Source: Rhodosorus marinus CCMP1338
Lineage: Eukaryota > Plantae > Rhodophyta
Reading direction: 5' to 3'
Length of the DNA: 64,000 nucleotides
Assembly: GCA_029953675.1 (NCBI GenBank)
Contig: JAMWBK010000002.1
Coordinates: 868,001 to 932,000, forward strand
In this document: positions 2,151-63,155 of the stretch, one piece after another
Layout: each line of letters starts with the position of its first letter
Numbering within the stretch: the first letter of the stretch is position 1
Translations under genes and position numbers: made by a program
Notes under the pieces: model-generated
What the model saw: the letters and a program-made list of their open reading frames with translations, nothing else
Database searches by the model: none
What the model was told of the DNA's origin: nothing

Positions 2151-4481
2151 ACTACAAAACTCCCAATCAAGAGACCGACCCTACAATCTTCTTGGCTCTG
2201 CTCATGGCCAAAATCCTGTTCGGCTTCCCCAGATCTCTCCCAATCTATTGCGGTAGATACATCGCTGAATCACAGACGTCTGGTCATCCTTGAGGTTGAT
2301 CTATGAGTGTCTCGTCGAGAACAATTGACATCGCCGGAACTGATCGAGAGCATCCTGTGCACGCTGGGACTGCAGAGCACTGAACACCGCTACATGCTGT
2401 GTTTCGGTCGGACGAACGGCTGATGTTGGTTGAGGAAGAAAGATTTATGCAGATGCGCTAAAGTTGCCAGTTGCCGAGAAGGTACTAGACGCTACAAGGA
2501 ACGCCTTTCATGACTGAGAACAATGCAACGTCACCAGACAAAGCAAGCGCTTTGCGCACAAGTTTGGTTCGCAAACCAAAAGCCCAAAAAGCCCAAAACA
2601 GAATCAAAAAGACCCAAGCTATTCCCGTGCTCCTAAGGATGAGCTACCGGAACGCCCGGCCAACCCAATCAACGTCCTGCGCAAGATGGCTCCTGCGGTC
2701 CCTAGGCTGATAAGCTGTACGCTTGTGGATTCTCTGATGCGCGCTTGAGGAGAGGGGTTGATTGCGAAATCGAAATTGTTCATCGACCGTCCCAGCCCAA
2801 CCGAAATCCCCGCAGACGAGTCACCAGAATATCTACAATCCTCACTATCAGAATCACGTCCTGTTCGGTCCTGACAGTTTTTTCCGTTCAAATTGAAAAT
2901 CCCGTTTTAATTCTAGAACTGAGCCCCCACCCACTAGTGCAACTCAACTTGTTAGGAAAAAAACGGCCAGGGGTCTATCTGAACGCCAGATTTTGCATGG
3001 TCTCCGATCAATTCAAAGGGTAGGGTAAAAATGTGTCAAAGAGACACACGCTCGATACCCCTGTTTTTATATCAGATATTCGCACTGTCCCGTGCGATAT
3101 AATACTCTTTTGTTTTAGAAAAAAAGCGGAAAATGTCGACCACTATCAGGGTAGGCACGTGTTTGGAGGAACGTATCGCCTTGCAATGAAAATACTAACA
3201 GAAGAAGAAAGGTATTGTAGGGTAGATGCTTCATAAGGGGTGAGATGGTCTTGCACAAGTGAACCGGGCGAGATCGGGCCGCGAAATCCGTGGGAGGTCG
3301 CCGAGGTCTCCAGTAAAAAAAAATAAATTCCAAATCCATAGAATATGCCATGTTCTAAAATATACCCAAAGGAGGACGGGGAGGGGAGGGTTGAGGGATG
3401 GGATCGCCCAAAGGAAGTTCCTAGTCCTATCTTTTCGTTGATAATCTAAAGCATATGGTCTGATTAAGAATTTATTGCAGTTCCCCCTCGGGTTTCGGGA
3501 ACCAGATCATTCCCAGCTGGTCAATATTATAGACTGTCCAGGCGGCGGCCACTTCCGATACCATCGGATCAGTCAATAGTAGACGAACCGGCGGAGAAAT
3601 TATTCTCCTTTTCCATTCTACTGGATTCTAATTGACTGATCCAATCAAAAATGTTTATTAACTCAGTGTTCCTACTTTAATGGCGGGTTTAATGCTCGAA
3701 CAAAAAATATCTTGACCGCAATTCGAAGGCGATGATATTCTTTTAAAAAAGGAGTGCAAAAAAACACGCACACACCTGGGGGTAGATAGAGCGGACAAAC
3801 CCTGCGGTAGGCTGATAAACGCATCGTTTTTATTAGGGGTGTTGTGGAGAAGAAAGATTATTGTATTAATAATACTCAAGGCAAACTTACTAGAATAAAA
3901 GAATATTAGAAACAGGTAAATACTTTGTTAAGATCGTATAGAAGATAAAAGCCCTTTGTCTGTTGGGGCTGGTTGATTTTGCTTCTGCCATTCATGCTGC
4001 ACAGTTCCTCTCAAACCCTACCCCACACACCAATATATTGGATTTTCAAATAGACGAAGAAACATGATCTTCGCGCAATGGAAAACAGGTTGCCGAAAGA
4101 TTTTTTCCCCAATCACTTCGAGATATTCGAAGGATTGATATTTTCTCGAAGGTCGTCGTTTCTTTTCTTCCTTTTTTCTTCGACGATTTGAGAGGGGATC
4201 GATTCTTCTGTGTTGCGGGGTAACCTCCGGGTCTAGATGTGCCTATTTGGGATATTATAGATCATAATTATGAATCAAAAGCATGAAAAAAGATTGGTTT
4301 TTCTTGAATTGATTGTGTCCGGGATTAGTTTTGGGACAGATTTTGGGGAGGGAGGAAGGGAGGGGTGGGGGTGGGGGATTCTGGGAGGTTGCAAACCTGG
4401 ACGTTGAAGGTGGACCAGGTCTTTGTTTTTGGGAGCTCGAACATGGGGGGGGTGGGGAAGGGGGAAACAGACTACTAGCTT

Positions 4482-4524
4482 GAGGAGGGAGGGAGGGAGG
4501 GAGGGAGGGAGGAGGAGGAGAGGG
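4482..4524 (+). repeat. (GGGA)n/(GGA)n purine microsatellite upstream of the DUF1995 gene
   Basis: Seen directly: gaggagggagggagggagggagggagggaggaggaggagaggg. Confidence 0.9.
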
Positions 4525-4811
4525 CAGGATATCGATAGCGCGTTTGTTTTCTGGTTGGAGGGAACTGGTTTGTATAGAAGTTTGGACTTCACAGGGAAGA
4601 CTCGAAGTGGACTGAAGGGATTTTGGAGGCAGACGGCGGTGGTCGTTTTCGGGGAGGGGTATCTTGAGCTGAGTTTTTGGTAGTGCTCCATGTGTGTCGG
4701 TATGGAGGTGAGCTATTGAGAGGTGGTGAAATTTTGGGTGAGAATTTTTATTCTTGGAAGGTCTGAGGTGTTTGGCAAAGTAGAGAACGAAAAAGAGGTT
4801 GGAAGGGCGCT

Positions 4812-5968
4812 ATGGCGTATGTGAACTGTGGCGTTGGGGTATCCCGGGTAGGGGTGGAAGGGAGAGTAGCGAGCAGAAGGAGGTCTACTGTGGTGGCCGT
4901 AGCGAGGAAGGTGAGGCGAGTGAGGAACGCGGGGGATGAATTGATAGGCGAAGGAGCAAAAGGTGAGTGTTTAGGATTCTCGGCGTTGAGTGTCATTTCG
5001 ATTTAACTGGGAATTTGTACGAATTTCTGACTACCGTTTTTGGTCCTTTTCTCGCTTTTGTTGTGGTCAGAGGGATGGTCTCGCTCAGGAAACTCCTCCA
5101 GGTTTCCCGTGGACTGGAATGCGGCTATGGACCAAGCCGGTGCCGCGGCCTGCAAAGCAATAGGCAAGGGCGAATCCAGGATACTAGTTGAACTGAATCC
5201 ACCCGTCCGGCATATAGTGATGGTGGAAAAATTGATCAGTCCATTGATTCAGGCCGGGAAGAAGGTGAAAGTGTACTTTGACACTATTGCTGAAAGCGCG
5301 GAAGCGGCTTCAATGCTGCCGGATCACCTTCGCGACCGTACGGAGTTCACTTACCTCGGGGATCGTGAGGACATGGGCGATTGCGACATCGCGGTTATAT
5401 ACCAGCCTAACAATATAAACGGCAACCCTAAGAAGATCGAGGATGTAGAGTGGGTTCATTACCGATTGGAATGGAATGAGCCGAGACCTGTAAGTACTCT
5501 AGCAATGGCTCCAGCAAGTGTATATTTCGGCGTGGAACTATGAGAGCTGAACAAATTTTCTTGGTTCAGGTTATCCTTGTGAATCCGAAACTCATGTCCC
5601 TTGGATCCGGATTGGATGCCCTGGGCAACATTCGACGGCCTATGTTCATTGAGGATTATGTTCACGCGTACTATCTGGATCCTAGCGTGTTCCACGACGA
5701 AAACATTCACGGAGGTTTGTTGTGTGAGTATCCACGAAAGTGGGAAATGTATGTATTCCGGTCCAACGGTGGATTCAGGCTGGTCGCTCAGCACCGAGCG
5801 AAGCCCAACGCGGAGAAAGTTCTCGTACAGTACTTGTGGAGGAGTGATATGATGAAGAGTAATAGTCAACGGATGAGACCTGATGTTACGCCGTTCCCAG
5901 TGTGTGACTCAATGCCCACCAGAAAGCATCCTGTGGTTGAAACAATTGGGAACCCAGAGTTCTTCTAG
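4812..5968 (+). CDS. DUF1995-family plastid protein (LPA3-related), 3 exons
   Basis: Exons 4812-4962, 5071-5489 and 5570-5968 join in phase at GT-AG introns. The N-terminus is transit-peptide-like. Motifs include FPVDW...A, RPVILVNP, YYL.P and GGLLCEYPRKW. Confidence 0.78.
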
Positions 5969-6049
5969 AATGCAGTAACAGCGTTTAACGAGTAATATGT
6001 AATTTTGTGTGACATTGTATTCTAGTATTGTACTTAGCGAGAGAAAAAA

Positions 6050-7844: not shown

Positions 7845-9009
7845 ATGGAAGAGCAGGAGCTGACTTTGAAGGGCGACGAGGAAGCAGTCGTTACGACCAA
7901 GCGCGAGAAGAGCAGCGTTTCCTTCTTTTCCAGACGGGAGGAGCCGAGCGTGACATTCTCGCAGAATTTGTCTTCGTCTATTCCGAAGAGGAAGATGTCG
8001 CGCCTGGATCAGTGCGAGATCGGCGAGTTTGGAATGAACGGTTCTTTCGTCGACCGTGCGTTTTCCAACGATCGAAAGTCTAGTCGCACGGTCGCTGCTT
8101 GGCGAAAGTCTGATGTTGTCCCCTGGGCGATGGACAACGATATCGACTTGAGCAACAGCTTTATCCAGCGGCAGGAGTCCTTCTTGGATCGAATTCGGCG
8201 TCTTAAGATAGGAGGCGCAGGTGACGAGAACGACTCTCCTCTCGAATTTAACGCTAGCCGCTCATCAAGCAAGTTTAGGACTCATTCAAAACTTAAAAGA
8301 GCTCGCAGGAAGCCCCTTCGCTTTGATACCGAGGACATGCTGACAGAGGAACAAGCACAAAAGATTGGGTTCGTTTACGGGGACGAACTGCTCGATGTGG
8401 GCTTCTCAGTGAGAAGAAAAGCTGTCCAGCATGTAAAAAACTACATCGCAGAAATAAGGGTTCCTGAATCTGAACAGGCATGGCCTCTCATATTATCTTC
8501 AGCTGACGTGAAGTGCCTTAGAGAAAAAACTATGGAGCCTCCCGGGAGTGGGGAGTACACAAACTTCGCTGTAAGTATCTCAGCAATCCTCGGTTGCCTG
8601 CTAAGGCTGAAACACGGTACAACAGAGTTTTTAAGATGAAAACCGTTCGACGGCGTGCTTCCCACAGAAACTTCGCGACTTGTACGGCCGCGATGGGATA
8701 TTTCGATGTCGCGGGTGCCGCAGCTTTCTGTTCCTTCCAGGAGATTTTATTGAGGAAGGGTATCCGTGGGCGACATTTCGCAGTGCATTGCCCGGCGCCT
8801 TGGTGAGAGCAAAGGTCACTCAGGAGAATGGCCTATCGTCGTGCTTCCTCTGCCAAAAGTGCGGCTGTTTTATTGGCCGATCCAACCACATGGGCGGGAC
8901 ATTCGTTTGCTCGAGATCTATCCACTACCACCCCATGTCCAAGGACGAGGAAGACCTTATCTTTAGAGCCTGCAAGAAGCGAAAGCAGAAACTTGATGCT
9001 AGGAAGTAA
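7845..9009 (+). CDS. MsrB/SelR-like zinc domain protein with long N-terminal extension (non-canonical active site), 2 exons
   Basis: Exons 7845-8570 and 8668-9009, phase-0 intron gtaagt...cacag. The sequence LSSADVKCLREKTMEPPGSGEY, DGIFRCRGC, PWATF..LPGA, CQKC matches the MsrB layout. RYCINS is replaced by GTFVCSRS. Confidence 0.75.
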
Positions 9010-10098
9010 TGTCGTGATCGGATTTCTGTTTCACGATCAACGAGAATTCACATGTAAAGCACCGGGCAGCACTCGGGGGAAACTATTGCTGGGAAGCAAT
9101 TTTGAGTACTACTTTCAGTCTTCAGGCTAACTTCAATCAGGTTAACCTGATAATTAGTCGTAGAAAGGGACAATCGTCCAATCGGATGACCTTATCCAGT
9201 AATCGAGTGCACGCACGAAGCTGTAAAAAGAACATATTTTTGAGCTAGGACTAATAGTCAACCGAAGTACAAGAGCCCCAGGAACTGCCGCTGACTAGCT
9301 TCGGGAAAACGAACTAAAACGCTAGCTACTCAACTTCCTGTGCCAGTACCGACCTCGGTTGGTGCTGGCACAGCTCTCTCCATTAGCGCAAAACGTGGCG
9401 GGCCGTGCAGGTTGATGAAGACTTTTATCAGGGAAAGTCAAATTCGGATTCGCTCCAGATGCGTGTAGAGTCTGCCCCTCGTCCCGTCATGCCAAGAGCA
9501 ACAGGCTTTCAATATGCGCGACTACGCAATCGCCTATACTAGTTTGCCGGAGTACGTCTTTTGCCCGAACGCGGGAGGGATCATGCGCTTCTCCGCGGCC
9601 GCGCATATCAAGCAGATGTGTCAGTGCGGACCTTCGTTATTCATCGCTGTATGCCTAGAACCACAGGATTTGGTATCGGCTCGGGGCGGCAACATGAGTT
9701 TACCGGCGCAGCTGCTTCTTCACTAGCCCACGTAGCCCACGTTCTGTATCTTGCTGCAAACGCCCCGGGGAATCGAGTCGAGTCGCTTATTCAGGGAATC
9801 TCTGTTGAACATCCCTCAACGAGAACAGCAGTCCGAGCCAGGCCTCGGTCGTACTCAAAACTTATTTCGATTTTACATTTATCGAAATAAAGAGCGCAAA
9901 CCTTCCTTCTTTGTGAGTTTTGTATGCCGTGGGTTTCTGGAAAAACTAACGATCCCAGCGGTTGTAAAAGTTTTCTATCCCCCATGCTTTACTGTTCTCA
10001 CATCGCTTTAGCTAAGAGGCCAGTAAACGACCAAACCATTTCCATACTACTAGTTCGCAGTGAACGTGTTTCATTCGGAGACGGACAAAGCACCACCT

Positions 10099-10332
10099 CT
10101 CAGGGAGCGAAGGATGTGTGCAGACGGACTTGTGGACTCTCCGACTGGATTAGTTCGTTGCTCTCACAATTCAGCTCTGGGAGCGGAGGATGTGTGGAGA
10201 CGCCCTTGCCGGCTCTCCTACTTGACTAGTTCTTGAGTTTCACAATTCAACTCAGGGAGCGGAGGATGTGAGGAGACCTCGCCCTTGCGGACTTTCCCAC
10301 TTGATTTGTTCGATGCTTTCTCAATTCAACTC
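10099..10332. repeat. Degenerate tandem repeat, three units of ~76-79 bp
   Basis: Units start at about 10099, 10175 and 10251. Each begins ct(c)a/tgggagcg(a/g)aggatgtg and ends (t)caattca(a/g)ct. Confidence 0.9.
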
Positions 10333-10466
10333 CTATTACGATCGCTCACTCCTGTGCTTACAAGCAACTCTTGAGAAACGAATTTGAGATCCGCGCTTAT
10401 AGCAAACCCCATTTCTATCCCCCAACCGCCCTAATATTCACGTCGAGCATCAGTCTCGTTTCATTT

Positions 10467-10863
10467 TTAGTTATCATTATTTCTGTATTTCCGTTTTGAA
10501 CTCCGTATGTGATCTAGGTAGCTCGCACAAGTCTAGAGCTATTGGCTTAGATTAGAGCCGCAAAACTCCTATATCTAGCACTCACGTCGGGTATATAATA
10601 TTCTAGCCACTCTGCGATCAGAGGAGTTACAATAGTGAAAGCTATAAGTGGATGCGCGACTCCATGAGCGCCTCTATAGGCTCTGAAAGAACTTCCATTT
10701 CCAACAGTTTCTGATTGAAAAATATATGCACGGCGACAGTGAGAAAGAAAACAAGAGAATAGATTCAGCTCCAAACTTACAACCGGCGTATGAGAGCGCC
10801 CTGAAGCATCCACCTGTATCTCTCGAGGAAGCTTGTTTGAGGGAATTTGCAGCCGTCTTGCAT
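10467..10863 (-). CDS. Hypothetical protein, 3 putative exons; true start uncertain and may lie further upstream
   Basis: Strong donors (gtaagt, gtgagt) and in-phase acceptors give MQDGCKFPQTSFLERYRWMLQGALIRRLAYRGAHGVAHPLIAFTIVTPLIAEWLEYYIPDTCASYLDHIRSSKRKYRNNDN*. No family was recognised. Confidence 0.3.
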
Positions 10864-11344
10864 TCCATTTCTTTCTGATATGAGGGTTTGACTTAGACAC
10901 GAGGTCACTGCTGTGGTGGCGCCGCTTGCGTTTGTGGCTTCGAGAATCTTTTCGCGACGGGTTAGATGATGCCGCCACTCGCTCGCGTTGTTTCCCTCTT
11001 CCTTGAGCTTTACAGGGGCACCTTCGACTGATCCTGCTGAGAAATTCTCGAGAATGAATCGTAGACCCAACTATCCCAGAAAGAATGCCAAGAAGCCGCC
11101 CTGAGCCGAGCTATTGGTTCGATGAGCTGTTTTTGCAGGTCGATGTGGGAGACTGATGTGATCGAGTATTCGTTTTTGGATTAAACTCTTATGGAATACA
11201 ACTTTTCATAAAAAGACAATAAATTGTAAGTTTAATATGACAAGTATATCAAAATAATCGTTAGCAGAGTTAAGGTATGAAGAAACCCGGCATTGGCCGC
11301 CGCCTTGACCCGAAGAATTGAAATGAATTTAGATTATAGCACTC

Positions 11345-11820
11345 CTCCAGACCAAAAAGCAATCTGTTTCCCAATTAAAAAATAGATAGATACGGGCATG
11401 CTCTAAAGTGAAACAAACGGCCAGGAACCGAACTATGCGTAGAAAGCCGACACGACTAGATGACAGTTCAGATTGGCTCGCTACTCTACCAACTGAGTTT
11501 TGGTGCGCTTTCATTTTTGTTGTTGTCAAAGATCGAAGCAACTGTTTCATATCAACCGATTGATGGGAGGGTGAGAAGGGATTTGAGGGGTCCTAGAGGG
11601 GTGTGGCACTAGCTGAGGCCAATTCCTCTCCCGCTTTGGCTTTGAGAGATTTTCATTCTCCTAGCGGACGTCGTCTAAGGGACGTCGCCACTCATCACTT
11701 CCGAAAAGAGGCTTAACCCTCCTATCCCAAAAAGCAAACTGTTTCCCATTTAAAAATAGACAGATACTCTAAACTGAAACAGCCGGGAACCGAACTATTC
11801 GTGGAAAGCTGACACGATTA
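11345..11820. repeat. Direct repeat pair of ~110 bp (11345-11460 and 11718-11820)
   Basis: Both copies share ccaaaaagcaa(t/a)ctgtttccca(a/t)ttaaaaa..ctctaaa(g/c)tgaaaca..ggaaccgaactat(g/t)cgt(a/g)gaaagc(c/t)gacacga. Confidence 0.85.
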
Positions 11821-12840
11821 TCTTTTTTTCGCAACCATCGAAAAGATAAAGAAAAAATTATACAATTCTGTCCCAGATGGCAAGATGAATTATTATCGTT
11901 TAAATTATTTCGGAAATAGGTGTCCCTCAATGCAAAACCACCTAAATAAACACAATTCAGCGAGTTTGTGTTTTTAAAAGCTAAGGTTGTAGGAAAGGGG
12001 GAGGGGGAAGTTTTTGATTCTAACTTATACGAAGACAGTGATATAACTGTGTTATTTTCTAATTTTATATCTCTTTCTTGCCAACCAGAGAAAAATATTC
12101 CGTAAGTTCTATCCCCCCTTCTCTAGTTTCAAAAATTTTGACGTTGAGTTTTGATTCATTGAGAGGATGAGAAACGGCAAATCCCAAACTGTTTCAAATT
12201 GCCCCCCTAGATAAAAATTGAGAAGTAGATATAAATTTGTCATATTAAATTTTTCGATCGTTTTAGGTCACAAACTCTTTTCTTTCTTCCCCCCCTTCCT
12301 CTCTTGATCTTTAAATCGTATTGCTTCTTCCCACCGCCTGTATATAGGTAATATCGATATAATTTATCGTATCCAATAAAATCTACTGCAATCCTCCACC
12401 GTGCTAGAGCATTCGACTGTGTAAAATATTTGTTAATGAATAAAAATATGGGTATTCTGAATTCTCAAGCCTAAATTGAGCGGGTTATACGACAGTTTGT
12501 TTTTATAGTATATATGATACTTTGTTTTACTGTATTTATCTGTAAGTACACGTCTTTTTTGGTGGGTGAACCAATAGAGTTCGGATCCAATGGGACTTTC
12601 GAATGTTGAGCAGGAAACGATCGATGCTACTGCTCTTGATGTGGCAAGGAGGATATACAGAGGGATGAGATTCACCCGGATAGGGGAGAGGGATGTTGCG
12701 TCGCGCACAGTATGGAACTGAAACTTTAGGAGGATCTGCGGGTATATGATCATACAGAGATTGTTTTGAGTTGCTGCGGTTTGATCTGGCCTGGCTGGTG
12801 GAGCTTTCCCCCCATTTCTGTGTGAGTTTTCTAGAGGGGA

Positions 12841-13699
12841 ATGGGTTTACGAGGGTTGGGCGGGAGGCGGCGGAGCAAGGGGCTTGACAAAGAAGCACAG
12901 CAGGGACAGGAAACTAAGGGTGCGGATGAGTTGGAAGAAGTAGAACAGGTGGAATGTGTAGACTCAGAGCTGGCTGAGGGCGTGGAGAAGGTTGATGTGC
13001 ATGATTCAGTGGAGGACTTCGATGAGGTTGTTTTGCTGGCCCCTGTGAAGGTCTACTCGAACGTACAGAGTAGGCAACTGGGAGTTGACTGGCATGCGCT
13101 GGAAGGAGATAAGGGATTCAGGGTTAAGTTCGCTCTGGATCGGGAGACGCTCAACTCGGTCAGGTCGCTCGTTGATGAGATTGACGTGCCCAGGGATGAG
13201 CTTCAGTGGCACGAGAAAGTTGGATTGAGCTACAAGTACATGCGAAAGCACAAGATGGAAGCACAGTACTCTGGAAAGTATTGCATCTTCGCGGTAAGCT
13301 GTTCAGTAGATCAAGGAATCTGGGGTGCTGGCAAGGGCATTCGCTCAGAGTGTCATTTTCAATCTTTTCTTTCAGACTGTTCCTCCTGAGGACGGTATTT
13401 TCCGGTGCCGAGGGTGTTCGAACTTCCTCTTCAGCAACCGTATGATTGTCAAGTGCAGGTCCCCATACGTATCTTTCCATGACTCCTTCCCGGGCGCACT
13501 GATGGAATCGACACATCCCAGGGCTCATGGATACGATGTCGACTGCTCCATATGCCTGAGCTTCATCGGCCGGGAGGAGCCGGATACTGGTAACTTCCAA
13601 GTCAACTCCGCATCAACGTATTTTCAACCCCTGCAACGACGGGAGATTGGGATGCTTAGCAAAATGTGTAACAATAGATGGAGGTTACTTAGCGCATAG
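12841..13699 (+). CDS. Second MsrB/SelR-like paralog with acidic N-terminal extension (catalytic Cys replaced), 2 exons
   Basis: Exons 12841-13293 and 13376-13699, with a phase-0 intron at the same position as in paralog 1 (after F-A). Motifs: DGIFRCRGC, SF...FPGAL, CSIC..FIG, GNFQVNSAS (resembles RYCINSAS). Confidence 0.75.
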
Positions 13700-15325: not shown

Positions 15326-15784
15326 TCAAGTAACTTGTTCTTCGGTCGGACTGCATAGCATATTCACCGACATGATGCTGGACCGGTGGACACTCCGCAT
15401 GTGGCGCTGGAAGTCCGTCTTCTGGAAGAACAGTTTGTTACAGAGGGAACAACCGTGAAGCTTCTCCTTTTCGTGCACGACCCGCACATGCTTCTTACAG
15501 TTACTCTTGTTCCCAAAGGTCTTGCCGCAATACTTGCACTCAGATTTCTTCGCCTGCTGGTGCACGTTCGCAATGTGGACGTTCAAGTGGCTGCTCTGTT
15601 TGAACAGCTTCCCACAAGTCTTGCACTCGTACGGCCTCAACTGGTCGTGAATCCCAAGAATATGCCGATCCACATAGAACTTCCTCGAGAAGCTCACCCC
15701 ACAATAATGGCAGAGGTACCTCGGCTGTGGCTGAGCCTTCGGTTCCTCGCACAAGGAAACATGATTATCAATTATCAACGCCAT
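15326..15784 (-). CDS. C2H2 zinc finger transcription factor (4 fingers), intronless
   Basis: Four C-x2-C-x12-H-x4-H fingers (CHYC, CKTC, CKYC, CSLC) with a RPYEC linker; ATG at 15784. Confidence 0.92.
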   Translation of the reverse strand: MALIIDNHVSLCEEPKAQPQPRYLCHYCGVSFSRKFYVDRHILGIHDQLRPYECKTCGKLFKQSSHLNVHIANVHQQAKKSECKYCGKTFGNKSNCKKHVRVVHEKEKLHGCSLCNKLFFQKTDFQRHMRSVHRSSIMSVNMLCSPTEEQVT

Positions 15785-19186: not shown

Positions 19187-22100
19187 CTAGGTCGTCCGTC
19201 CCTTCGATTTCTGCTGTGTGCCCACTAGGTCGGAGAACGCCGATTTTCGGCGAAGCAAGGAGGCCGGTGACTCGTACTCCTCCACCAAGCCATTCTTCAT
19301 GACAGCCACTCTGTCTGAATCGATGATTGTGTTAATACGATGAGCAATGGTTAGAACCGTGCTCCCCTTGAACTCGGATCGGATTGTCTTCTGCACAATC
19401 GCATCAGTCTCAACATCAACATTCGCGGTCGCCTCGTCCATCACGAGAATCTTTGGATTCCGAACAATCGCCCTCGCGATACAGAATAGCTGCCTCTGCC
19501 CAAGGGAGAAGTTCTCTCCACCCTCAACTACTTCGGCGTCAAGTCCACCTACATATCGCAAACACGACATACATACACACGTTTTTAGTTCTGTAGAAAG
19601 GACACGCAAGCGTTTTCGCAAGCTCTGAACATATCTGTACTAACCAGAAAGGTTGGCAATGACCTCCTTCAGCTGAACCAGCTCCAGTGCGTTCCAAAGC
19701 TCAGCATCAGTCTTTGTATGGAAAGGATCTATGTTCAGCCGAACATTCCCCGAAAAAATAATCGGGTCTTGCGGAATCATGCCGAGCTTCGAGCGCAAAT
19801 CCTTCAAGCCAATGGTGCTGATGTCTATGCCGTCGATTAAGATACTCCCTTCTGCTTTCTCGACCAAGCGGAACAAGGAAACCGTCAAGGACGACTTCCC
19901 TGAACCTGTCCTTCCAGCTATCCCGACCTTCCAGAGCGGGTCTACTGAAAGATCAACTCCCTTCAGAACCAAGTCAAGCTCCGGTCGGTATCTCATTTTG
20001 AAGTCTTTGAATTCCACCCGACCTTGATCGGGCCAGTTGTCCGGTGGTCTATTGTCCGGAATAATTGGTTCAGCTTCTCGCTCAACATCCTTCGAATATT
20101 CAACTTGACGTTCCACGCTCGTAAGCTTAGTTTCCATGTCAACTGCTCCGCGGACCATAAACGCAGTGACGCCAGTGACGGATATCGTATATGTCAGCAA
20201 TAGCCCGGCCTGCGACGCATTTAGCCCAATCACAGCAGCATCGCGGGAAGCTACTACGAGGCATCCTACAGCAAGAAGAATGAAGAGCGACACCATCTCA
20301 AGCCGAAACTGCAACCACCGCATTGCCACCTGCAGAATATAGTATGCAGCATTCGCATCATCCTGTTTATGGTGGTTTTCTGCACAGGCCTCCGCACTCC
20401 GACCGTAAGCGCGAATTGTACTAATACCATGAGGCGAAAACGCTTCCGTTAGCTAAGCTCCTCAAGCTATCAGTAGGGTGTACCTTCAATTACCTGGTGC
20501 CATACAGAGACTCCGAAAAATGGGCATAGATCGGGCTACGCTGAATTGATTCAATTCTCTGTAGTTCTCTCGAGGTTCTGCGGTAGTACCACTGCACTGT
20601 CCAGTACCCCAGCAAAATGAACGGCAACGCAATGAGGAACCATGGCAGGAATACCACTACAAGAATATACACACCAATCATGTTCAGAATGAGGAAAAAT
20701 TGGTTGTCCATAACCGGAGGTAAAAGAATATCGACAGCATCTGTGTCCTTCGAAAACCGGTTCAGAATTCGACCCAACGGTGTAGTGTCAAAGAACACCA
20801 TCGGGGCTCTCAATACATTCTGGAGCATATCGTTGTGAAGGCATTTAGCAGCCTTCGTAGAGAAGTATGCGAAAAACGTTGATCGGGTAACAGCAAGCAG
20901 CCCGAGGATAACTCCGAACATTCCGTATATCCCAGCGTAGAAACCTAAGCGCGCTTGAGTACCTTCCAAGTCCACCACAAATTGATTTGACCAGTACGTC
21001 AGCCACAAGTCGGGTGCCATGTTAGACAATTGGGCCATACAATAGATGACAAGCATAGAAATGGCATAAAACAGTCCACCTAATTGCAACGGTTTCAAGG
21101 GCAGTGGGTTTCAGATAAGTGCGCTTCCAGACAGCCGGCTGAGACGGACAGCTTGATATTCCTCCCAGCAATGATTCCTCACCTCCTGCACGGAAGTAGT
21201 CCAACCAAACGGCTTGAGAGATTCCGCCATGAGCTCTTGCTTCGGTGTTCACCAAGTGACCATCCTGCTTCTCTTCCTCCTTCGTTGCGATCATGTCCAT
21301 GGTCTGCATGAGGTTCTCCATATCCGTTCCTTTGTCTGCCTCAGACGTTTCTGTATCATATTTTGTCACAGTTGCCTGCAGAGTTGCTCCAAAGGCTTCC
21401 ATGATCTGGAAAAGCTGTGTTCCTGGATACAACACGAAGGGAAATAGTTTTCAGTTTAAGGGCTGCATGGGCCTGAGTGCACGTCAAAGATGACTTCTCG
21501 TCAGAAAAGGTTGCTTACCTTCCCTGTTCAGTTCCGCAAACGTTCCAACATCAACAATTCGACCACCCTTCATAACGTAAACCCTATCGGTGTAGGGCAG
21601 GAACTGAAGCTGGTTCGTCACGAGAATTCTCGTCTTCTTGCGAAGTTGCTTGGCGAAGCATTCCCGGAACATCTGTTCTCCAACGTGTGCATCGACTGCA
21701 GACAAAGGGTCATCAAGTATATATATGTCGGCGTTTGTGTATACGGCTCTCGCGACAGACACACGTTGTTTTTGGCCTCCAGAGAGATTGATCCCTTTCT
21801 CTCCGATCTCTGTCAGATCTCCGGCAGGGAGGGTCTCAAGATCAGATTCGAGGGCGGTTGAATGGATTGTTTTGGAGTACATCGTGTCGTCGTAAGCCTC
21901 TCCGAAAATGATGTTACTTCGAAGCGTGTCGTTGAAAATCCAAGGCGTCTGGGCTGCATATGCGACGGAACCTCGCACGTCGACGCTTCCCTTAGAGTCC
22001 AAAAGGATTAGAACGTGAGGTTGGCGGTTAGGACAGATTTTCTTGTCAGATTCAAGATCAGGGTCCACACTACCTCAAGCTTCGAAATTTCACCCAGCAT

Positions 22101-24041
22101 CGCCGAGACCAAGGAAGATTTTCCACTGCCGACCGCTCCAACAATTGCCACGAATTCCCCAGGTTCCACTGTGAAGTTGATGTTTTTCAGTTCATACGCA
22201 TCTTCGTCCACCGCTTCATCTACTGCATCTACTTCATCTAGTTCCTCTAGTTCCTCTTGTTCCTCTTGTTCCTCTTGTTCCTCTTGTTCCTCTACTTCCT
22301 CTACTTCCTCTACTTCCTCTACTTCCTCTACTTCCTCTACTTCCTCTACTTCCTCCACCTCATCCTCCGCTGGAGCTTGGTCCGTAGACCCTCTTCGCCT
22401 TCGGAATAATCCTCGCTTCTTCTTCTGAGGCTTCTCCCGTGACTTTTCCTGTCGCTTCATCCTGCTCAGAGAATCATCATGATCTGGGATGAAAAAGAGT
22501 TGACATCAGAGTTTAGAACACAGCGGAACCTAACCGGTTGACACGAAACTAAATGTTCGATCAGGTTATACCTTTTCTCCACATGAAGCGACCTTCCACT
22601 ATCTCCACCCGTCCGCCCTCAGGGCTCCCCTCTTTGTCTGTCCAATTTCGATCCTCATCGTTCATCTGGCCGGCTTCCAGCAGAGCCGAGAGGCGTTTGT
22701 TCGACACCTTCAGCTGCGCGAGCTGGGTCACGAGCATGGGCAGCAGCAGAAGTGGGAACCTTAACACGTTCATGTACCCAATAGCTGGGAATACGACTTC
22801 CGGAGTCAGGATATTACCCTGCGCAGAATAAATCACGAGCACAACAATTGCAATAATTGACGGCAGCGCGGAGAACATTCCAAAGTTGATCCCCCGAAGG
22901 ATTGATGTCTTCAAGATTGCCTTAACCTCCTTCGCGCGGACCTCTTGAATTCTCTCTTCAAACGAATCCTCCCAAGCATACAATTTGATGGCCTTTATGC
23001 CCTGCAGCACTTCGTTCATCAGTTTGACTCTTACATCTGAGTGTACCATAACCTCCTTCCGCAGCGAATTTGCCCAGAGGAACATCTTTCCTTGCAGCGG
23101 GATTGTCAGAATCATCAGTCCAAGACCTGCTAGAGCTGCAACTCCGACGAGACGAATCAGCAGGGCGAGGCCTATGATGATTACCAAAGGCCCGGACCAC
23201 AGTTGCTGGAGAAACTGCGTAACCTCAACATATCTAGTGAAGGCATTGAAGGACATCCAGTTAGCTATCTAGTCGCGCATGCGCTAGTGGTTCTGCGACA
23301 CGCTTCCTCACCTTTGCGTGTCGTTGCTCATTAAGTTCACGATTTCTCCCACCGTGACGTTCTGCCTAGAGCTATTACTCAAGTTCGTGCTCTTCTTAAA
23401 AACAGCCGCTGTCAAAGCAGCGCGACAGCTTATTCCCATTTTGTACATTATAAGGAAAGAATGACTCTGACATACACCCAACCCGACCCACTGGCCAAAC
23501 GCGAGGATGATCTATTTGCAACGAATACCGGTGAATTGTTGTCAGCGATTATTTCAGGTTGGGGGACGACTGCACTGGAAGATTGGGTGAGACGTACCAC
23601 ATACAAGTACCCAAGTCCGGGGGATATGGATGGGTCTCCCAGGAAGATAGTTATTTGTTGGATGAGCGTCGGAGCTGATAAGTTGTATGCTTGAGACACA
23701 AGCATAAACATGGCTGCCACCGCAAACATTCTCCTGTGAAGCTTCATAAATACTCGGCTAAGCGAGGGCGCCGGATCAAGGTCCTGCTCCCTCCGAGCGG
23801 CCTTCCGCTTCTCGTACTCTTCTTCGAACTCAGATTCTCGGAAGCTAGCAGCCTCACTTTTAGGAATATCCCATATGTCCTCTGGATTCAGCTGTCTTTT
23901 CGCACCCCGCTTAATCAGCGGATTAATCCATGAATACGAAAACCTTGACAGCCATGACGCACTGTCCGGTCCGGGTCCAGGAGGCCCTGGAAGTTCATCT
24001 TCCACCTCCCGCTTCCTTCCGAAACACTTAAACATCTCCAT
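19187..24041 (-). CDS. ABC transporter subfamily C (MRP-like, short form without TMD0), 9 exons
   Basis: TMD1-NBD1-TMD2-NBD2 layout. NBD1 has [17 protein letters not shown] and DDPLSAVD; NBD2 has [17 protein letters not shown] and MDEATANVD. Eight canonical GT-AG introns join in phase. Confidence 0.95.
22219..22365 (-). repeat. Coding 9-bp tandem repeat encoding (EEV)7(EEQ)4(EEL)2 within ABCC NBD1
   Basis: Plus-strand units ttcctctag, ttcctcttg and ttcctctac are seen directly, in frame in the ABCC exon. Confidence 0.95.
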
Positions 24042-51485: not shown

Positions 51486-52881
51486 CGCTAGAAGCGTATA
51501 TTCGTTAATTTCTTGTTTTGGACATCCAACTCTTCCCCCGTTTCCATTCTCTTTGGGAAGTGCCTTCGCTGGGGGGGGGGGGTGTGTGTGTGGAAGTGGA
51601 ACCAGGCTAATAAATATTTTGTAAAAAAGAGGGAGGAATGGTCATTCTCAACGCTCGCATCGGTTCCCAGTTTTGCCCCAAAAATAACTTCTATTTGGCA
51701 TTATACGGAAAAACACACCACGCCCCGCGCCCTGGTGCGAAAAGAAAATATAGATAAAATAAATTCGCCAAAGCCGAGCCTTCGTCTTGTTTTGGAAAAA
51801 AAGGAGGATTCCATTTTCATTCGTCAAGTTTTCCCACTCTTTAGAAAGAAAATTAGAATTTTTTAGTTAGAACGGAGAAAGTCCGATAGTGTAGTGTATG
51901 GCTCAAGAATTATTAAGCATTTAATGGTTCAACTTCCACTATGGTGGATAATATAAACGAAAACGGCCTAGGATGACAGAGAAACCATTAATTAGACTTG
52001 AGCAACCTGCTCCCAAGTTTATTTCTCCCCCTATACAATAAAATACAATGCCCTTGACAAGGTTGAAACCAAAAACAAACAAAAAAAATGGAAACCCCCC
52101 GGTCTAACCCCAATCACATATCGAAATGCTACCACCTACCAAATCCGAATTGCCATTTACAAATTAACTTGTTTCATGAACGGAAATTATTCGGTTAATT
52201 TAGGGGTGTGTGTGAACAAAAAAGTACATTTTTTGCAGATATACTTCCAAATTTTCTTTTGGTGTCTGCAGAAATTGATAGTGAGACTTTCTTGTTTCTT
52301 TTGGGGGGAGGGATTTAGGCGACCGAGGAGGATGATCGTGCGCTTCCTTATGTAATTTACTTGAATTAGAAAGTGTTAACATAAGCTGCATAATGTAGGG
52401 GGGGGGGTTGGTGTGCAGTTGTGTCTATGAGTTTTTGAGAAACAATTTTTTATTTTATTTTTTGCTCTTGTTTCGTTGCGGCTTGAAAGTAGGGTTGCGA
52501 TAGTGTTGGAGTGGTGGAGGAAGGAGGGTCTTGGAAGGTAGCGGGCGATGTCTTGTGTAACGGGCGTTCGGATGAGGGATATATATCAGTAGATGTTTGT
52601 ACTGGGTACTTGGAGGAAGGGAAGGGACTGAGGAATGCACTGGATGAAGCTGAGAGGGGTTGAAGACTGTGTTTGGGGCAGAGGAGCGGTGGGGTTGATG
52701 GTTTAAGCGGCCTTTTTGAGAGGTTTTGGGACATGGGTGTGATGAGGGAATGAGCGTCAGTGTCGCTTGTCCCGTTTTTATTGTTTCGACTGCGACTTTG
52801 CTCGGTTCTTTTTTTTTGGGGCGGGGGCGGGAGGGGGAGGGAGAGTTTCAGTGTGCGTTTGAGTGATTTATTTGAGCAAAG

Positions 52882-53913
52882 ATGTTGGTAGAGGAGGAGC
52901 TTTTGCATTGCTTGGAGGCCTCGGGCATTGTCCGAGCGAGGAGGAAGATGTGGAGGTCGCTTCCTGAATCGTTTCGAGGTGGCGATGCGGTGAAGGTGTG
53001 GGTGACCGCAGAGGCGGCATTCAACAACTACGAGGCTCTGAGGAAGGGCCAGATGATGCTAGAACGCGGCTTGATCAGTCCCGTCGGTGGAAGAAGAAAG
53101 AAGTTTGACGTCAATAGCTTCTATAAGATCACACGAGCAGAGTCCGGGATTTGGGATGGAGCGTTTAAAGAACCGGACCAAAAGCTTCTTGTTCGTTTGG
53201 TGTTGGATAATATTGTCGTCGAGACAAAGTCGCGTGGTTCCCCGTTTCCATCGTACTTCTCTGCGCGCGAGGCAGTGAAGCTTTGGGTGGCGAGAGGGAC
53301 TGTCCCTGATGTGCACATGGCTGTTAAAGTCGGGGAAAAGCTTGTTCAGAGCAGGTTCATCGAGCCTGTCGGACATAGGAGACCTTTTGCGAACAAGAAT
53401 CGTTACTTTGCGGTTACCATTGCTCAGCAGGATGATTACGTTGCGACTGATGAGCTTGTGGCGTTTTTGGAGGGAAACGACGGAAAGAAGAGAGGGTCGG
53501 TTGTCTTCCAGAAGTTCGTCACCACTATAGTGGCGAGCAACAAATCATCGCTGGAAACCGTCCATGCCGAGTTCGTGGACGACGAGCTCGAGAAAGAGGA
53601 AAGGGCGAGCGGTTTCGGCAGCAGATTGTCCGCCATCCGACAGTGAGTTGACCAAAGCCTAGGAAATGTCCTGTAGTTCTGCCGTGAACTGAACCAACCT
53701 CTTCTTGTTTTCCACTGCAGCTCGTTGGTTAGCATTGGAGGGAATGACATGACATTTGAGGAAGAAGATCTTTCGTAAGGGCCGATTTCTTTTAGGGAAA
53801 CGCTGTACTTGAGGTGCAATATTTCTGTTCTGAATCGTCCTTCTTTTATTCCTGGTCGTGCTTCTTACAGGGTCCCTTTCTTTGAGCCGAAGAGTGTTCC
53901 ATTCTTCGAGTGA
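52882..53913 (+). CDS. Tandem DEP-domain protein, 3 exons
   Basis: DEP1: SFRGGDAVKVW...EALRKGQMMLERGLISPV...F...FY. DEP2: FSAREAVKLW...AVKVGEKLVQSRFIEPV...F..Y. Phase-2 introns at 53643-53720 and 53775-53870; stop at 53911-53913. Confidence 0.72.
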
Positions 53914-54556
53914 AGAGGATCAACATCCGCCCAGTAGGCGCCTTCGGCGATCGAAATCTCCGAGATACGGAGACCACTGATATGTTGTCGCCGATGGGCT
54001 GGAGATGCGTTGCGTAGACATGACTTCCTTATCTTCTTTGCAGCGAGTGTTTATATGTCTTTGTTTATTTTATCCTATTAGTGCAGTGGAGAAGTTAAAA
54101 AGTCCACTGTCTATGTGCCGCTCTTATGGGTGCCTCAGGGGCTTGGTGCACCGCAAGAGGCCGTTTGCCATCAGGTGCCACGGCTTGTGTGTTCGATGCT
54201 TCACTGCCAACTTGAGCGGTGTTGGCTTCTTCGTTGGCGTTATTTGAGACATCATCCATCCACAGCAACTGGCTGCAGTGAAAGCGGTACCAGGCTCAAC
54301 GAGGCTCAGCGCGATTCGGCGAAAGCAGATTGCCTCCAATCTTGACTACGAAGTTGACTTACTGGTGCACTTCTTTCTGGAGTCTGCTTATCGTCAATTC
54401 GTCCTGAAACTTGCTCAGTTTAGAGCGTCCCTCACAGCCAGTAGCAGAACCTTTATTCGTAGCAAGTCACGCTCTTCTCATGCAAAACCATTCTCAACCA
54501 TAACCAGCACTTCCATCCGTATCTGCTGAACATTTCCTTACCCAACCCAACCCAGG

Positions 54557-59837: not shown

Positions 59838-60030
59838 TATCGAAGCTTGGTCTCGTACAGGTTCTCGCTGGCTGCGAGGTATCTTTCACAACGACCCAGG
59901 GCGTCTAGATAGTCTGCTCACGGAGCTTTCTTTGACCCTGTGGCGCTCAAATGCTGCTTTTTTTGTAGACGCGCGTCATCAGCGTCTTGTCTCTCGCTTC
60001 TCAGGGTAGTCAGGCTCTGAATAAACGGAA
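59838..60030 (+). mobile_element. CRE-like family B, 3' fragment, copy 2
   Basis: GSRWLRGIFHNDPGRLDSLLTELSLTLWRSNAAFFVDARHQRLVSRFSG*, ending ggctctgaataaa. Confidence 0.8.
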
Positions 60031-60039
60031 CAACAAGTT

Positions 60040-60730
60040 CGAGACCGGTAAGCGCCAACCGCGGATACGCAGGCATGACCGTGAAGAAGCAGGAGGTGAG
60101 CCTCCCCCCCAAACCGCGCAGGCGAGCCAAAATAGCAGGAAGATGAACTCAGAAGGGTGGCATACGAGTCCCGATGTATGTCCCACGAAAGGGGTTTTTG
60201 GATTACATCGCTCCTCGAAGGGGCCAGACCCGACCGGGAAACGCCCTCCTCTGGCGGTCTCGACGGCACAACCACGGCATCAATATCCTCGGCAGTTTCT
60301 ACTCCATTTCCAGCACACGGCGCTGCAGCAAGGACTCCCGAACGCTGGCTGCCGAGGGAGTCAAGAACTCCCGCCCAGGAATCGCAACGAGCCTGGGTAC
60401 CACTCGGCAGGGCAGTGCATTGTTGAAAGGCGGCCTCCACTTCCGCAAAAACCACCCCGAGCCGCGGTGCGAGAGTCGCGTCTAGCCTCCCAACCCGAAG
60501 CCCTCTCAACAAACCACACACAGGCGGATCATGCTCCGTAGACCACGTATTAAGCTCATTGGCGCACGAACTCACCACAGCCGCCGGCTGAATCGCCGCA
60601 TAAGATCCCACGGCCAGCCCGCCCAACCGCACGGGCAACGCGATCTGCCGGTGAAGGACATCCTTTTCTGCGACTCACGCATGGGTTGCCATCGCGCCGC
60701 CTGAAGACCAGACAACGTTCTGAGCACATT
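60040..60730 (-). mobile_element. CRE-like family A' internal fragment (RT thumb to pre-zinc-knuckle region), inverted
   Basis: Minus strand QIALPVRLGGLAVGS..IQPAA and ARLRGLGGRLTSCFFTVMP, which resembles the CRE motif ARL.S..G..A..WL...P. Confidence 0.75.
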
Positions 60731-60875
60731 TGAACCCGGACCCTGTGGAGGGGCAATGCCTGGGTTACCCTTAATAGCTTTAGGTAGGTAGGTAGTTCTG
60801 CTTGCTGTCACCTGTCGGTGACTCCCCGTTCCCTATCGTAGGACACCCACCCGGGTTGTTAGTTTCTCAATAAAA
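60731..60875 (+). mobile_element. CRE-like family A' 3' end (ORF C-terminus plus 3' UTR and A-rich tail)
   Basis: RTLWRGNAWVTLN followed by a UTR homologous to 62410-62545, ending tcaataaaaagaaagaaaa. Confidence 0.75.
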
Positions 60876-60899
60876 AGAAAGAAAACGACTGGACATGCC

Positions 60900-62545
60900 C
60901 CCTCAGCTGGTGCGTGATAGCGCGGGAGGTGGACGCGCGTTCTCTACATGTGCTCAGTCGTCTTTGCGGGCCGCTGCATGACCAACCGCTCTTGTCAATT
61001 GGCGATGCCAATTTGTGGCAAACGCAGATTCAACTCCCTTGCCGCTGGTGTGGCTTGAGATTTTCCTCCCAGGCGCGCATCCAGCCCGCTGCCGCCGTCG
61101 ACGCCTGGCTCCAGCTATTCCAAGGCCCGCTCGCAGATCTGCCGCCTACCCTCCGATTGAAGCAGCTACTGACGAGCTCCGATGATAAGTCTACGCTTCC
61201 CAGAACATGACCCTGCTAGCTGTCGAGATCCAGAACTTGCTCCGCACTGGTTCGGAGAACTTGCCCGGAGATTGTTCGCCTTCCCTCGCCCGCGCCGCCA
61301 CATGAGACGGACTCCTGAACCCGAGTCCTGTGCGACGCCATATGCCGTCAACTGAGACCGTCGAAGACAGCCCACCCGGCCTTTAACCCACGTGCAACGC
61401 GCCTTCTCCAACGTCTCTGCATCAGACAGCGTAAAGTGCCATAGTCGACGAGCCAACGGTCCCAGTCTACGTGCGAGCTCGACTTCGCTCAGAAACCGGT
61501 GGCGCAAGCGGTACCTGGCTTCGCGATATTCCAACAGCCCGCACACTCTTCGTCACAAGGGCAGCAACTCATCGCGAACATCCGACAACTCCTTGGAGTA
61601 CCGCTCGTTGACAAACCGCTGCCCGCGCCCTGCCCCTCCTGCAGAACGACCCATGACGTCCACGGTTATCAACTCCTCCACCTTTGCACCCGCTCCCTAC
61701 GACTGCGGATCCATCGACACCACGAGCTAGTGCGGAACACCGCGCGGCTTCTGAGAGATTGGGGCTACGAGGCCTTTGTATGCGGCAGCGATGTCAAACC
61801 CTACCTTTCGCGATTCGGCGTTGACATACCGGTTTGTCCCCCCATTATTGAATGCTTTGGCTTGATAGATAGTGTAGGTTCTCGCTGGCTGCGAGGTTTC
61901 CCTCGCACCGACCCAGGACGTCTAGATAGTCAGCTCCTGGAGCTTTATTTGACCCTGTGGCGCTCAAATGCTGCTTTGTTTGTAGACGCGCGTCATCAGC
62001 GTCTTGTCTCTCGCTTCTCAGAATAGTTAGGCTCTGAATAAACGGCGACGTTGTCGTCGAGCCAGGACCAGTGCACGAGGAGCTACCTCATCGAGCACCT
62101 GATATCTACGGGAAACACGGGCGAACGCACCGGACGTTATTCTTCGATGTCGTAGTTACCAGCCCTCTCCAGACGGCCTTCCTGCGACGTACAGCTAGCT
62201 ACACGAACTGCCCTCGCTGCCCACACTGTCTCTCAATAAAGGGAAAGTCAGTAAATATCGCGCCGCTGTGGCTGACCCAGAGGATTTTATCCCGATCGCC
62301 CTCGAGACCCATGGAACACTCGCGACCTGTACGATGGCAGACCTTGCTTGGCTCACGAGACACCGTCACTCCGACCGCAGCGCCCTCAATAGAGCCCTTG
62401 CCGCTATGAACCGCACGCTGTGGAGAGGCAATGCCTGGGTTGCCCTCAATAGAGGAGAGAGTGCTAACCCCAGTACTAGGTAGTTGGTGATTATTTCGGT
62501 AGTCGTCACATAGTTATGACTCCCCTTTGCCTTTCGTAGGATACC
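60900..62545 (+). mobile_element. CRE-like family A, 5'-truncated copy (thumb, CCHC knuckle, RLE endonuclease, 3' UTR), interrupted by family B copy 3
   Basis: QIQLPCRWCGL, RARLRSETGGASGTWLRDIP, CPSC-x8-(Q/H)LLHLC...RHHELV, RAPDI...FFDVVVTSP, FIPIALETHG and NRTLWRGNA; frameshifted. Confidence 0.85.
61788..62043 (+). mobile_element. CRE-like family B, 3' fragment, copy 3, nested in family A
   Basis: SDVKPYLSRF...PIIECFGLIDSVGSRWLRG...LTLWRSNAALFVDARHQRLVSRFSE*. It is flanked by cggc on both sides. Confidence 0.85.
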
Positions 62546-62569
62546 CATCCGGGTTCACAGTAAAACCTT

Positions 62570-63090: not shown

Positions 63091-63104
63091 CAGTAAAGCT
63101 CCTT

Positions 63105-63155
63105 CACGTTATTCAGAGCCTAGCTAGCCTGAGAAGCAAGCAACAAGACGCTGAA
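63105..63155 (-). mobile_element. CRE-like family B, copy 5 (~50 bp 3' tip)
   Basis: Reverse complement tcagcgtcttgttgcttgcttctcaggctagctaggctctgaataa matches the family B terminus. Confidence 0.7.

Follow-up and report, generated by a model that had tools for sequence, protein, structure and literature searches.

In the red alga Rhodosorus marinus CCMP1338, two adjacent genes encode proteins that are descended from methionine sulfoxide reductase B (MsrB) and that, judging from the residues they have lost, very probably do not work as the canonical enzyme, peptide-methionine (R)-S-oxide reductase (EC 1.8.4.12). We refer to them as gene 1 (NDN08_007591) and gene 2 (NDN08_007592). They lie in a 64,000-nucleotide stretch of contig JAMWBK010000002.1 (positions 868,001 to 932,000 of its forward strand), which we call the window and whose features are collected in the table near the end of the text. 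The spliced translations are 100% identical to the deposited R. marinus models of the same names, and in UniRef both proteins are called only "MsrB domain-containing protein". An original prediction made from the letters of the window described two genes about 4 kb apart on the same strand that share a phase-0 intron after an F-A dipeptide. This description agrees with our results: both genes are on the forward strand with 3831 bp between them, the F-A codons preceding the two introns align with each other in the pairwise paralog alignment (32% identity over 176 aa, E 2e-24), and the gene 1 junction matches a spliced transcript (L002). The two locus tags are consecutive, the spacer contains no annotated gene, and a tblastn search of the 64-kb window returned no third copy.

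The evidence that both proteins derive from MsrB comes from sequence profiles and from predicted structure. Against a gathering cut-off of 24.9 bits, the Pfam SelR model (PF01641) scores 28.8 bits with gene 1 and 30.9 bits with gene 2, and no match of either window protein to the Yippee, Mis18 or CULT models was obtained in Pfam at E <= 10. When the proteins were searched against the PDB with phmmer, MsrBs were the sole matches. Of the wider red-algal family described below, 18 of 18 members examined match SelR (best E 2.7e-20), and a profile built from these 18 finds solved MsrBs in the PDB at E 5e-24. The AlphaFold2 models of the two proteins reach predicted local distance difference test (pLDDT) values above 90 over residues ~170-355 of gene 1 and ~100-258 of gene 2. 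In a Foldseek search of the PDB the first ~30 matches of each model are all MsrBs, with E values near 4e-10 and template-modelling (TM) scores of 0.7-0.82, the scores being normalised to the target and the structures compared being AlphaFold2 predictions. Thus the two comparisons proposed with the original prediction, of SelR with Yippee and CULT models and of AlphaFold models with MsrB, both came out in favor of MsrB. Gene 1 also gave matches to Sprouty (E 0.003) and LIM models, which fell below their cut-offs and which we attribute to its Cys-rich composition.

Two CxxC pairs form a structural zinc site in most, but not all, MsrBs, and both pairs are intact in each of the two genes. This MsrB-like domain with its paired zinc ligands had been predicted for both, and the ligands prove to be kept across the family as well. 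The active site is another matter. In MsrB, numbered here according to the mouse MsrB1 protein, Cys95 is the nucleophile and is activated by the Arg93-Asp85 pair, whereas His77 and Asn97, the latter at the bottom of the pocket, hold a water that contacts the sulfoxide oxygen (Kim & Gladyshev 2005, PMC1278935). To these can be added a Trp that contacts the substrate, and the His and Phe of the HLGHVF motif (Lupas et al. 2015, PMC4287342). We assigned the corresponding columns in MAFFT alignments with canonical MsrBs. In both genes HLGH is replaced by FIGR, in agreement with the original prediction, the VFxD segment that contains Asp85 is deleted, and the Arg93 column holds G or N. The column of Cys95 itself is occupied by F321 in gene 1 and Q226 in gene 2, and at the substrate-contacting position of GWP(S/A)F gene 1 keeps Trp (PWATF) and gene 2 has Tyr (PYVSF). 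At the Asn97 column, gene 2 retains N228 as part of a VNS remnant and gene 1 has C323, at +2 from the catalytic Cys. Because the preceding loop carries a deletion, the register of the gene 1 Cys rests on the downstream motif, where an ungapped match between CSRSIHY and NSxSLxF sets C323 on the Asn97 column. We also considered a register counted from the Gly of T-G-x-R-Y-C, which would bring this Cys onto the catalytic position, and rejected it, as both the alignment and the CSRSIHY/NSxSLxF match give the Asn97 column. The earlier reading of RYCINS as GNFQVNS in gene 2, with Gln for the catalytic Cys, and of a Cys two residues out of register in gene 1 is therefore correct. In line with these losses, the two proteins score only 15.4 and 15.7 bits with the NCBIfam MsrB equivalog model (TIGR00357), whose cut-off is 113.05, as compared with 170 bits for a canonical control (P0027).

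The module that the two proteins share is larger than the SelR domain and includes an additional strand and helix upstream as well as a C-terminal helix. The ~40 residues directly upstream of the SelR match are homologous between the genes, and both models place a helix there (residues 191-202 in gene 1 and 101-112 in gene 2). In gene 1 this helix is flanked by short strands (176-178 and 205-207), giving a clade-specific strand-helix-strand arrangement over residues 176-207. The C-terminal helix, common to both Rhodosorus genes, is ~20 residues long with an S/T-x-x-E cap, and it bears a Cys (C344 in gene 1, C248 in gene 2) that is invariant across the gene-1 and gene-2 clades. Ahead of the module each protein has a disordered N-terminal tail. 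That of gene 1 spans ~165 residues, with an isoelectric point (pI) of 9.4, 14.5% Ser and a single modeled helix at 103-121, and that of gene 2 spans ~88 residues, with a pI of 4.5 and 24% Asp plus Glu. The original prediction of unrelated extensions, one basic and Ser-rich and the other acidic, holds in that the tails are non-homologous and of this composition, but the lengths it gave (~200 and ~110 residues) are too long. Within the gene-1 clade the tail contains two conserved motifs, QRQESFL.R, which is predicted to be helical, and RRKP.R.D.ED.LTEEQ.

Gene 1 and gene 2 have relatives with which they form a wider family. When 1.84 billion representative proteins were searched exhaustively with HMMER, using a profile built from the first four homologs, 21 of them matched at E <= 1e-10. 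Word-index homology searches lacked sensitivity by comparison (4, 2 and 7 matches), and the wider family is visible only to the exhaustive profile search. Orthologs of gene 1 (P0002, P0003 and P0010) and of gene 2 (P0011, P0012 and P0014) were identified, and ~18 further proteins bear the same signature as the two clades: xME.PfsG.Y, two CxxC pairs, G(W/Y)atF with its aromatic residue, F-[LI]-G instead of HLG, (V/I)-(N/S/C)-S where canonical MsrBs read C-I-N-S, and the C-terminal helix. All members with a named source are red algae of the Stylonematophyceae or Porphyridiophyceae, at least seven in number (Rhodosorus, Purpureofilum, Bangiopsis, Timspurckia, Erythrolobus, Porphyridium purpureum and P. 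aerugineum), and several of these species have several paralogs.

A census of 25 red-algal members against 29 canonical MsrBs, in which all of the scored positions are near-invariant, shows how consistent the pattern is. The zinc Cys residues are kept in 25/25 members, whereas the catalytic Cys, present in 29/29 canonical sequences, is found in 0/25. Neither His of HLGH survives in any member, the first (His77) being Phe in 24 and Tyr in one. Arg93 is found once among the 25, and the Asp85 segment is deleted in 20-22 of them. The Thr of GTE has become Met in 20 members, Phe in four and Ile in one, and the Trp position is aromatic in every one. The proposal of a duplicated and diverged family of putative MsrB pseudoenzymes is thus consistent with what we find, namely two sister clades within a larger red-algal group that would be catalytically inactive by the same token.

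On a neighbor-joining tree the gene-1 and gene-2 clades each receive 198/200 bootstrap replicates and are sisters in 128/200. A single sample of a second species yielded both a gene-1-type protein (P0003) and a gene-2-type protein (P0011), and the duplication therefore predates that split. The intron position of the Rhodosorus genes recurs in a gene-2-type gene of a further organism (L008; 93 nt, GT..AG, phase 0, same codon), and the gene for a Porphyridium purpureum member (P0158) has no intron. We conclude that an old tandem duplication gave rise to the two genes and that selection has kept both.

Several family members already stand in databases as "Peptide methionine sulfoxide reductase B5", "MsrB", "MsrB5" or "peptide-methionine (R)-S-oxide reductase" in Porphyridium and Timspurckia (P0158, P0021, P0018 and P0078; L004 2501-3103 on Porphyridium purpureum VRMN01000001.1). 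As these proteins have neither the catalytic Cys nor the Arg nor either His, they are probably over-annotated. A literature search turned up nothing on an MsrB family without an active site, on an MsrB pseudoenzyme or on these red-algal proteins, and Pfam has no separate model for the family. The earlier statement that no named family of this kind was known therefore stands as far as papers and Pfam models are concerned, but it has to be qualified in that members are deposited under MsrB names. What is new is a coherent, multi-paralog and selectively maintained red-algal clade of MsrB-like proteins without the active site, so far undescribed. Outside the red-algal group we noticed other MsrB-like proteins that also lack the catalytic Cys and HLGH (P0138, P0153, P0035 and P0077/P0151). 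One of them, P0138, is encoded by a metagenome-assembled genome of the Patescibacteria (FVGR...YRIYS) and has lost its active site independently. In some of these proteins Thr has likewise become Met and His has become Phe or Tyr, so that the active site may have been lost repeatedly along a similar route.

Transcripts exist for both genes, and both are under strong purifying selection. The transcript evidence, like the strain comparison, comes from the transcriptome of another R. marinus strain. For gene 1 there is a spliced full-length transcript (L002, encoding P0007) whose junction is exactly as predicted, together with a second isoform that retains the 97-nt intron (P0008, 256 aa). For gene 2 the sole transcript found (L001) is polyadenylated and retains the intron. 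An in-frame TGA three codons into that intron limits its product to 154 aa (P0006), without the MsrB-like domain. The splicing proposed in the original prediction is thus seen in transcripts of gene 1 and not in that of gene 2. We nevertheless expect a full 258-aa gene 2 protein because exon 2 is intact and conserved, the deposited model agrees, and the transcript of an orthologous gene-2-type gene (L007, encoding P0011) is contiguous across the splice junction. Retention of the intron in both paralogs could be regulated, or it could merely reflect unprocessed RNA.

Selection was measured as the ratio of nonsynonymous to synonymous divergence (dN/dS) between the two R. marinus strains, using Nei-Gojobori estimates and one-sided p values. 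Over its whole length gene 1 has a dN/dS of 0.067 (p 1e-20) and gene 2 a dN/dS of 0.21 (p 1e-11). Within gene 2, residues 86-258 give 0.105 (p 3e-12), exon 2 gives 0.09, and the acidic tail gives 0.42 (p 0.01). The synonymous divergence of 0.2-0.4 between the strains is comparable to that of the untranslated regions (UTRs), ~0.21. The check suggested with the original prediction, a search for red-algal orthologs and a test of dN/dS, therefore yields orthologs in other red algae as well as strong constraint on gene 1 and on the gene 2 domain.

What might such proteins do? We lean towards the view that they serve as non-catalytic binding or scaffold modules. The MsrB beta-tent and its structural Cys4 zinc site have been retained, and Cys95, the Arg93-Asp85 activators and His77 have been removed along with the VFxD loop. 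Two former active-site positions have consistently turned hydrophobic, the Thr of GTE to Met and His77 to Phe, with the Trp position staying aromatic, so that the polar reaction pocket may have become a hydrophobic or aromatic one, or may have been filled in. We favor this kind of remodeling because the same hydrophobic replacements occur family-wide and the substrate-contacting aromatic residue is kept. The protein would then work by binding rather than by catalysis, and the capped amphipathic C-terminal helix and the disordered tails, basic in gene 1 and acidic in gene 2, may provide further interaction surfaces.

Several observations weigh against a binding or scaffold role, or at least caution against taking it for granted. 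Inactivity is inferred from sequence alone. The gene-1 clade conserves C323, at the floor of the former pocket on the Asn97 column, and both clades keep the Cys of the C-terminal helix. The only gene 2 transcript found is the intron-retaining one, and the 25 red-algal sequences group together with only 69/200 bootstrap support. Moreover, Met, Phe and the aromatic residue may be conserved because the core was repacked, and not because they line a ligand pocket. A more specific version of the idea, which we regard as rather unlikely, is that the family are "readers" whose hydrophobic pocket binds a side chain of a partner protein, be it methionine, methionine sulfoxide or another that bears a methyl group, without turnover. 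Such proteins might act as a methionine-redox sensor or recognition module, with gene 1 and gene 2 pairing through their Cys-containing C-terminal helices in the manner of Mis18-alpha and Mis18-beta.

It is also conceivable, if unlikely, that the gene-1 clade is a redox enzyme or switch whose nucleophile has been relocated to C323, with C344 or C223 as the resolving thiol. C323 is kept in 4/4 gene-1 orthologs, a Cys recurs at its column in P0014 and P0016, and that column is the Asn97 position at the bottom of the MsrB pocket (PMC1278935). In addition, the helix Cys at C344/C248 is invariant across the two clades and gene 1 retains the substrate-binding Trp. However, the residues that would activate a thiolate (Arg93 and Asp85) and those that would polarize the sulfoxide (His77 and Asn97) are all absent, and both proteins fall far below the MsrB equivalog cut-off. 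Since gene 2 and most other members have no Cys in the strand, thiol chemistry is in any case not the common function of the family.

A structural role as subunits of a large complex such as an organellar ribosome, with no ligand pocket at all, seems to us very unlikely. The idea draws on the first non-enzyme structural neighbor of both models, which follows directly after the MsrBs in the Foldseek results and is a SelR-domain protein of the Tetrahymena mitoribosome (mS81; PDB 6Z1P chain BL, 6z1p_BL). mS81 is an integral small-subunit protein of that ribosome (PMC7326499) and so shows an MsrB fold serving as a structural part of a large assembly. Long disordered basic tails, found in gene 1 and in many members, are also typical of proteins associated with ribosomes or nucleic acids. 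Against this, the likeness to 6z1p_BL is weak (14-15% identity, with a root-mean-square deviation of 13-15 A over the alignment), mS81 is an organellar protein of a ciliate (Tetrahymena thermophila), and nothing places the red-algal proteins in a ribosome. No N-terminal targeting sequence can be recognized in either, gene 1 beginning with MEEQELTLKGDEE and gene 2 having an acidic tail, and several paralogs per species with very different tails fit poorly with a single stoichiometric subunit.

It is extremely improbable that the two proteins are not derived from MsrB but are diverged Yippee/Mis18 or CULT proteins. The beta-tent fold and the two CxxC pairs are common to these families too, six of the 18 family members weakly match the Yippee-Mis18 model (PF03226, best E 0.0017), the profile of the 18 finds Mis18 in the PDB (E 6e-5), and Mis18, cereblon and YPEL5 appear among the Foldseek matches, after mS81, at E 1e-4 to 1e-3. 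Yet SelR and solved MsrBs are ahead by many orders of magnitude in the hidden Markov model, profile-to-PDB and structure comparisons alike, the CULT model is absent from the Pfam matches of the 18 members, the MsrB-specific N-terminal segment W..L...Y.vLR...(T/M)E.PfsG.Y is present, and the remnant (V/I)NS..(L/I).F motif fits an MsrB of the eukaryotic RHCVNS type. We therefore consider membership in either family refuted. The notion that the genes are decaying duplicates and their deposited models prediction artefacts is almost certainly wrong too: all catalytic residues are gone and the intron-retaining transcripts of both genes would end the protein before the domain, but the selection analysis effectively refutes it (dN/dS 0.07 and 0.10, p <= 3e-12, with synonymous and UTR sites ~20-40% diverged), the frames are undisrupted in both strains, another species has intact orthologs of both, gene 1 has a spliced full-length transcript, and the zinc ligands are kept throughout the family.

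For the non-catalytic binding role that we favor, the Mis18, Yippee and CULT proteins would offer the best functional analogy. Mis18 combines a Yippee-like domain with a C-terminal helix, and YPEL5 and cereblon act within E3-ligase complexes. Like the red-algal pair, Mis18, YPEL5 and cereblon have a zinc-stabilized beta-tent without a catalytic residue, accompanied by extra helices or tails for assembly. The red-algal proteins differ in being far closer to MsrB (Foldseek E 4e-10 as opposed to 1e-4 to 1e-3), and their loss of catalysis is independent of that in Yippee, Mis18 and CULT and much more recent. CULT domains have a conserved aromatic cage made of three Trp plus Tyr/Phe at pocket positions. 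The cage maps to MsrB positions that include His111, the second His of HLGH, and Phe113 (PMC4287342). In the red-algal proteins no such cage is found: both genes have R at the His111 column, which varies within the family, and Phe113 belongs to the VFxD segment that is deleted in most members.

Measured against canonical MsrBs such as human MSRB3 (6QA0) and the enzymes of B. pseudomallei (3CEZ) and E. coli (6SYM), the red-algal pair has the same fold (TM 0.7-0.82), a SelR domain above the gathering score, the two CxxC pairs, the N-terminal W..L..Y.vLR..xE.PfsG.Y segment, an aromatic residue at the Trp position of GWP(S/A)F, and the remnant (V/I)NS..L.F strand. It differs in lacking the catalytic Cys/Sec, the Arg93-Asp85 pair, His77 and His80 (HLGH being F-[LI]-G-x), in the deletion of the VFxD loop, in the change of the GTE Thr to Met and in failing the equivalog model, and it adds the upstream strand and helix, the 20-residue C-terminal helix and the disordered N-terminal tail. 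Some of the altered positions can change within the MsrB family. The selenoprotein MsrB1 has Gly77 and Phe97 as part of a natural variation at His77, Val81 and Asn97, which is tolerated only since its nucleophile is selenocysteine (PMC1278935). The red-algal pair, by contrast, lacks a nucleophile at position 95 and contains no in-frame TGA.

It is customary to treat MsrB as a universally conserved repair enzyme, and genome pipelines name SelR-domain proteins accordingly. At the same time, pseudoenzyme offshoots of enzyme families are common, and the non-catalytic use of the beta-tent fold has precedents. The red-algal family would imply that the MsrB beta-tent has turned from enzyme to non-enzyme at least once more, and within a single eukaryotic lineage, with intermediate features such as the zinc site, the N-terminal lid and the aromatic pocket residue still visible. 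It may thus provide a young and tractable case of the route by which beta-tent enzymes turn into binding modules, as has been proposed for Yippee, Mis18 and CULT, and it bears on the question of whether cells have non-catalytic readers of methionine or oxidized methionine. On the practical side, it corrects MsrB annotations and counts of the antioxidant gene repertoire in red algae.

Table. Positions of the MsrB-like gene pair, its functional landmarks and the surrounding features (numbering of the window, position 1 being its first letter).
Feature	Position	Strand	Description
Gene 1, NDN08_007591	7845-8570 + 8668-9009	+	GT/AG splicing, open frame of 355 aa
Gene 1 exon 1	7845-8570	+	residues 1-242: tail, strand-helix-strand, N-terminal helices of the MsrB-like domain to ...MEPPGSGEYTNFA
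Gene 1 intron	8571-8667	+	97 nt, GTAAGT...CACAG, phase 0 after F-A (TTC GCT/GTAAGT); site of intron retention
Gene 1 exon 2	8668-9009	+	residues 243-355 and stop; beta-tent core
Gene 1 CxxC pair 1	8707-8718	+	C256/C259
Gene 1 CxxC pair 2	8851-8862	+	C304/C307
Gene 1 FIGR	8869-8880	+	replaces HLGH
Gene 1 C323	8908-8910	+	conserved Cys, Asn97 column
Gene 1 C-terminal helix	8941-9003	+	residues 334-354, bearing conserved C344
Spacer between paralogs	9010-12840		3831 bp
Gene 2, NDN08_007592	12841-13293 + 13376-13699	+	GT/AG splicing, open frame of 258 aa
Gene 2 exon 1	12841-13293	+	residues 1-151: acidic tail, helix, N-terminal helices of the MsrB-like domain to ...MEAQYSGKYCIFA
Gene 2 intron	13294-13375	+	82 nt, GTAAGC...TTTCAG, phase 0 after F-A (TTC GCG/GTAAGC); site of intron retention, L001 582-670
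Gene 2 exon 2	13376-13699	+	residues 152-258 and stop
Gene 2 CxxC pair 1	13406-13417	+	C162/C165
Gene 2 CxxC pair 2	13544-13555	+	C208/C211
Gene 2 FIGR	13562-13573	+	replaces HLGH
Gene 2 Q226	13598-13600	+	catalytic-Cys column, followed by VNS
Gene 2 C-terminal helix	13637-13693	+	residues 239-257, bearing conserved C248
DUF1995 domain, whole	5040-5968	+	two overlapping open reading frames in different frames
DUF1995, first frame	5040-5543	+	profile positions 1-110
DUF1995, second frame	5540-5968	+	profile positions 111-195
Tandem repeat in spacer	10099-10332		76 bp, 3 copies, ~80% match
Spacer open reading frame	10547-10978	-	143 aa
Direct repeat in spacer	11415-11458 and 11777-11820		short, dispersed, 362 bp apart
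C2H2 zinc-finger reading frame	15326-15784	-	multi-finger
ABC transporter exons	19187-24041	-	ABC_membrane and ABC_tran domains

The surroundings of the pair (table) give no functional clue, and the neighboring DUF1995, C2H2 zinc-finger and ABC transporter genes have no evident tie to it. The spacer holds a tandem repeat and a dispersed direct repeat, and the 143-aa reverse-strand reading frame there has no Pfam match. Upstream, the DUF1995 domain is split over two reading frames, which suggests a short intron or a frame change inside one gene. Downstream lie the zinc-finger reading frame and the ABC transporter exons. The composition of the window is uneven in places, with a locally strong GC skew in two 2-kb bins (0.29 at 4001-6000 and 0.25 at 52001-54000) and a GC content of 0.55-0.585 at positions 60001-64000, as compared with ~0.47 elsewhere.

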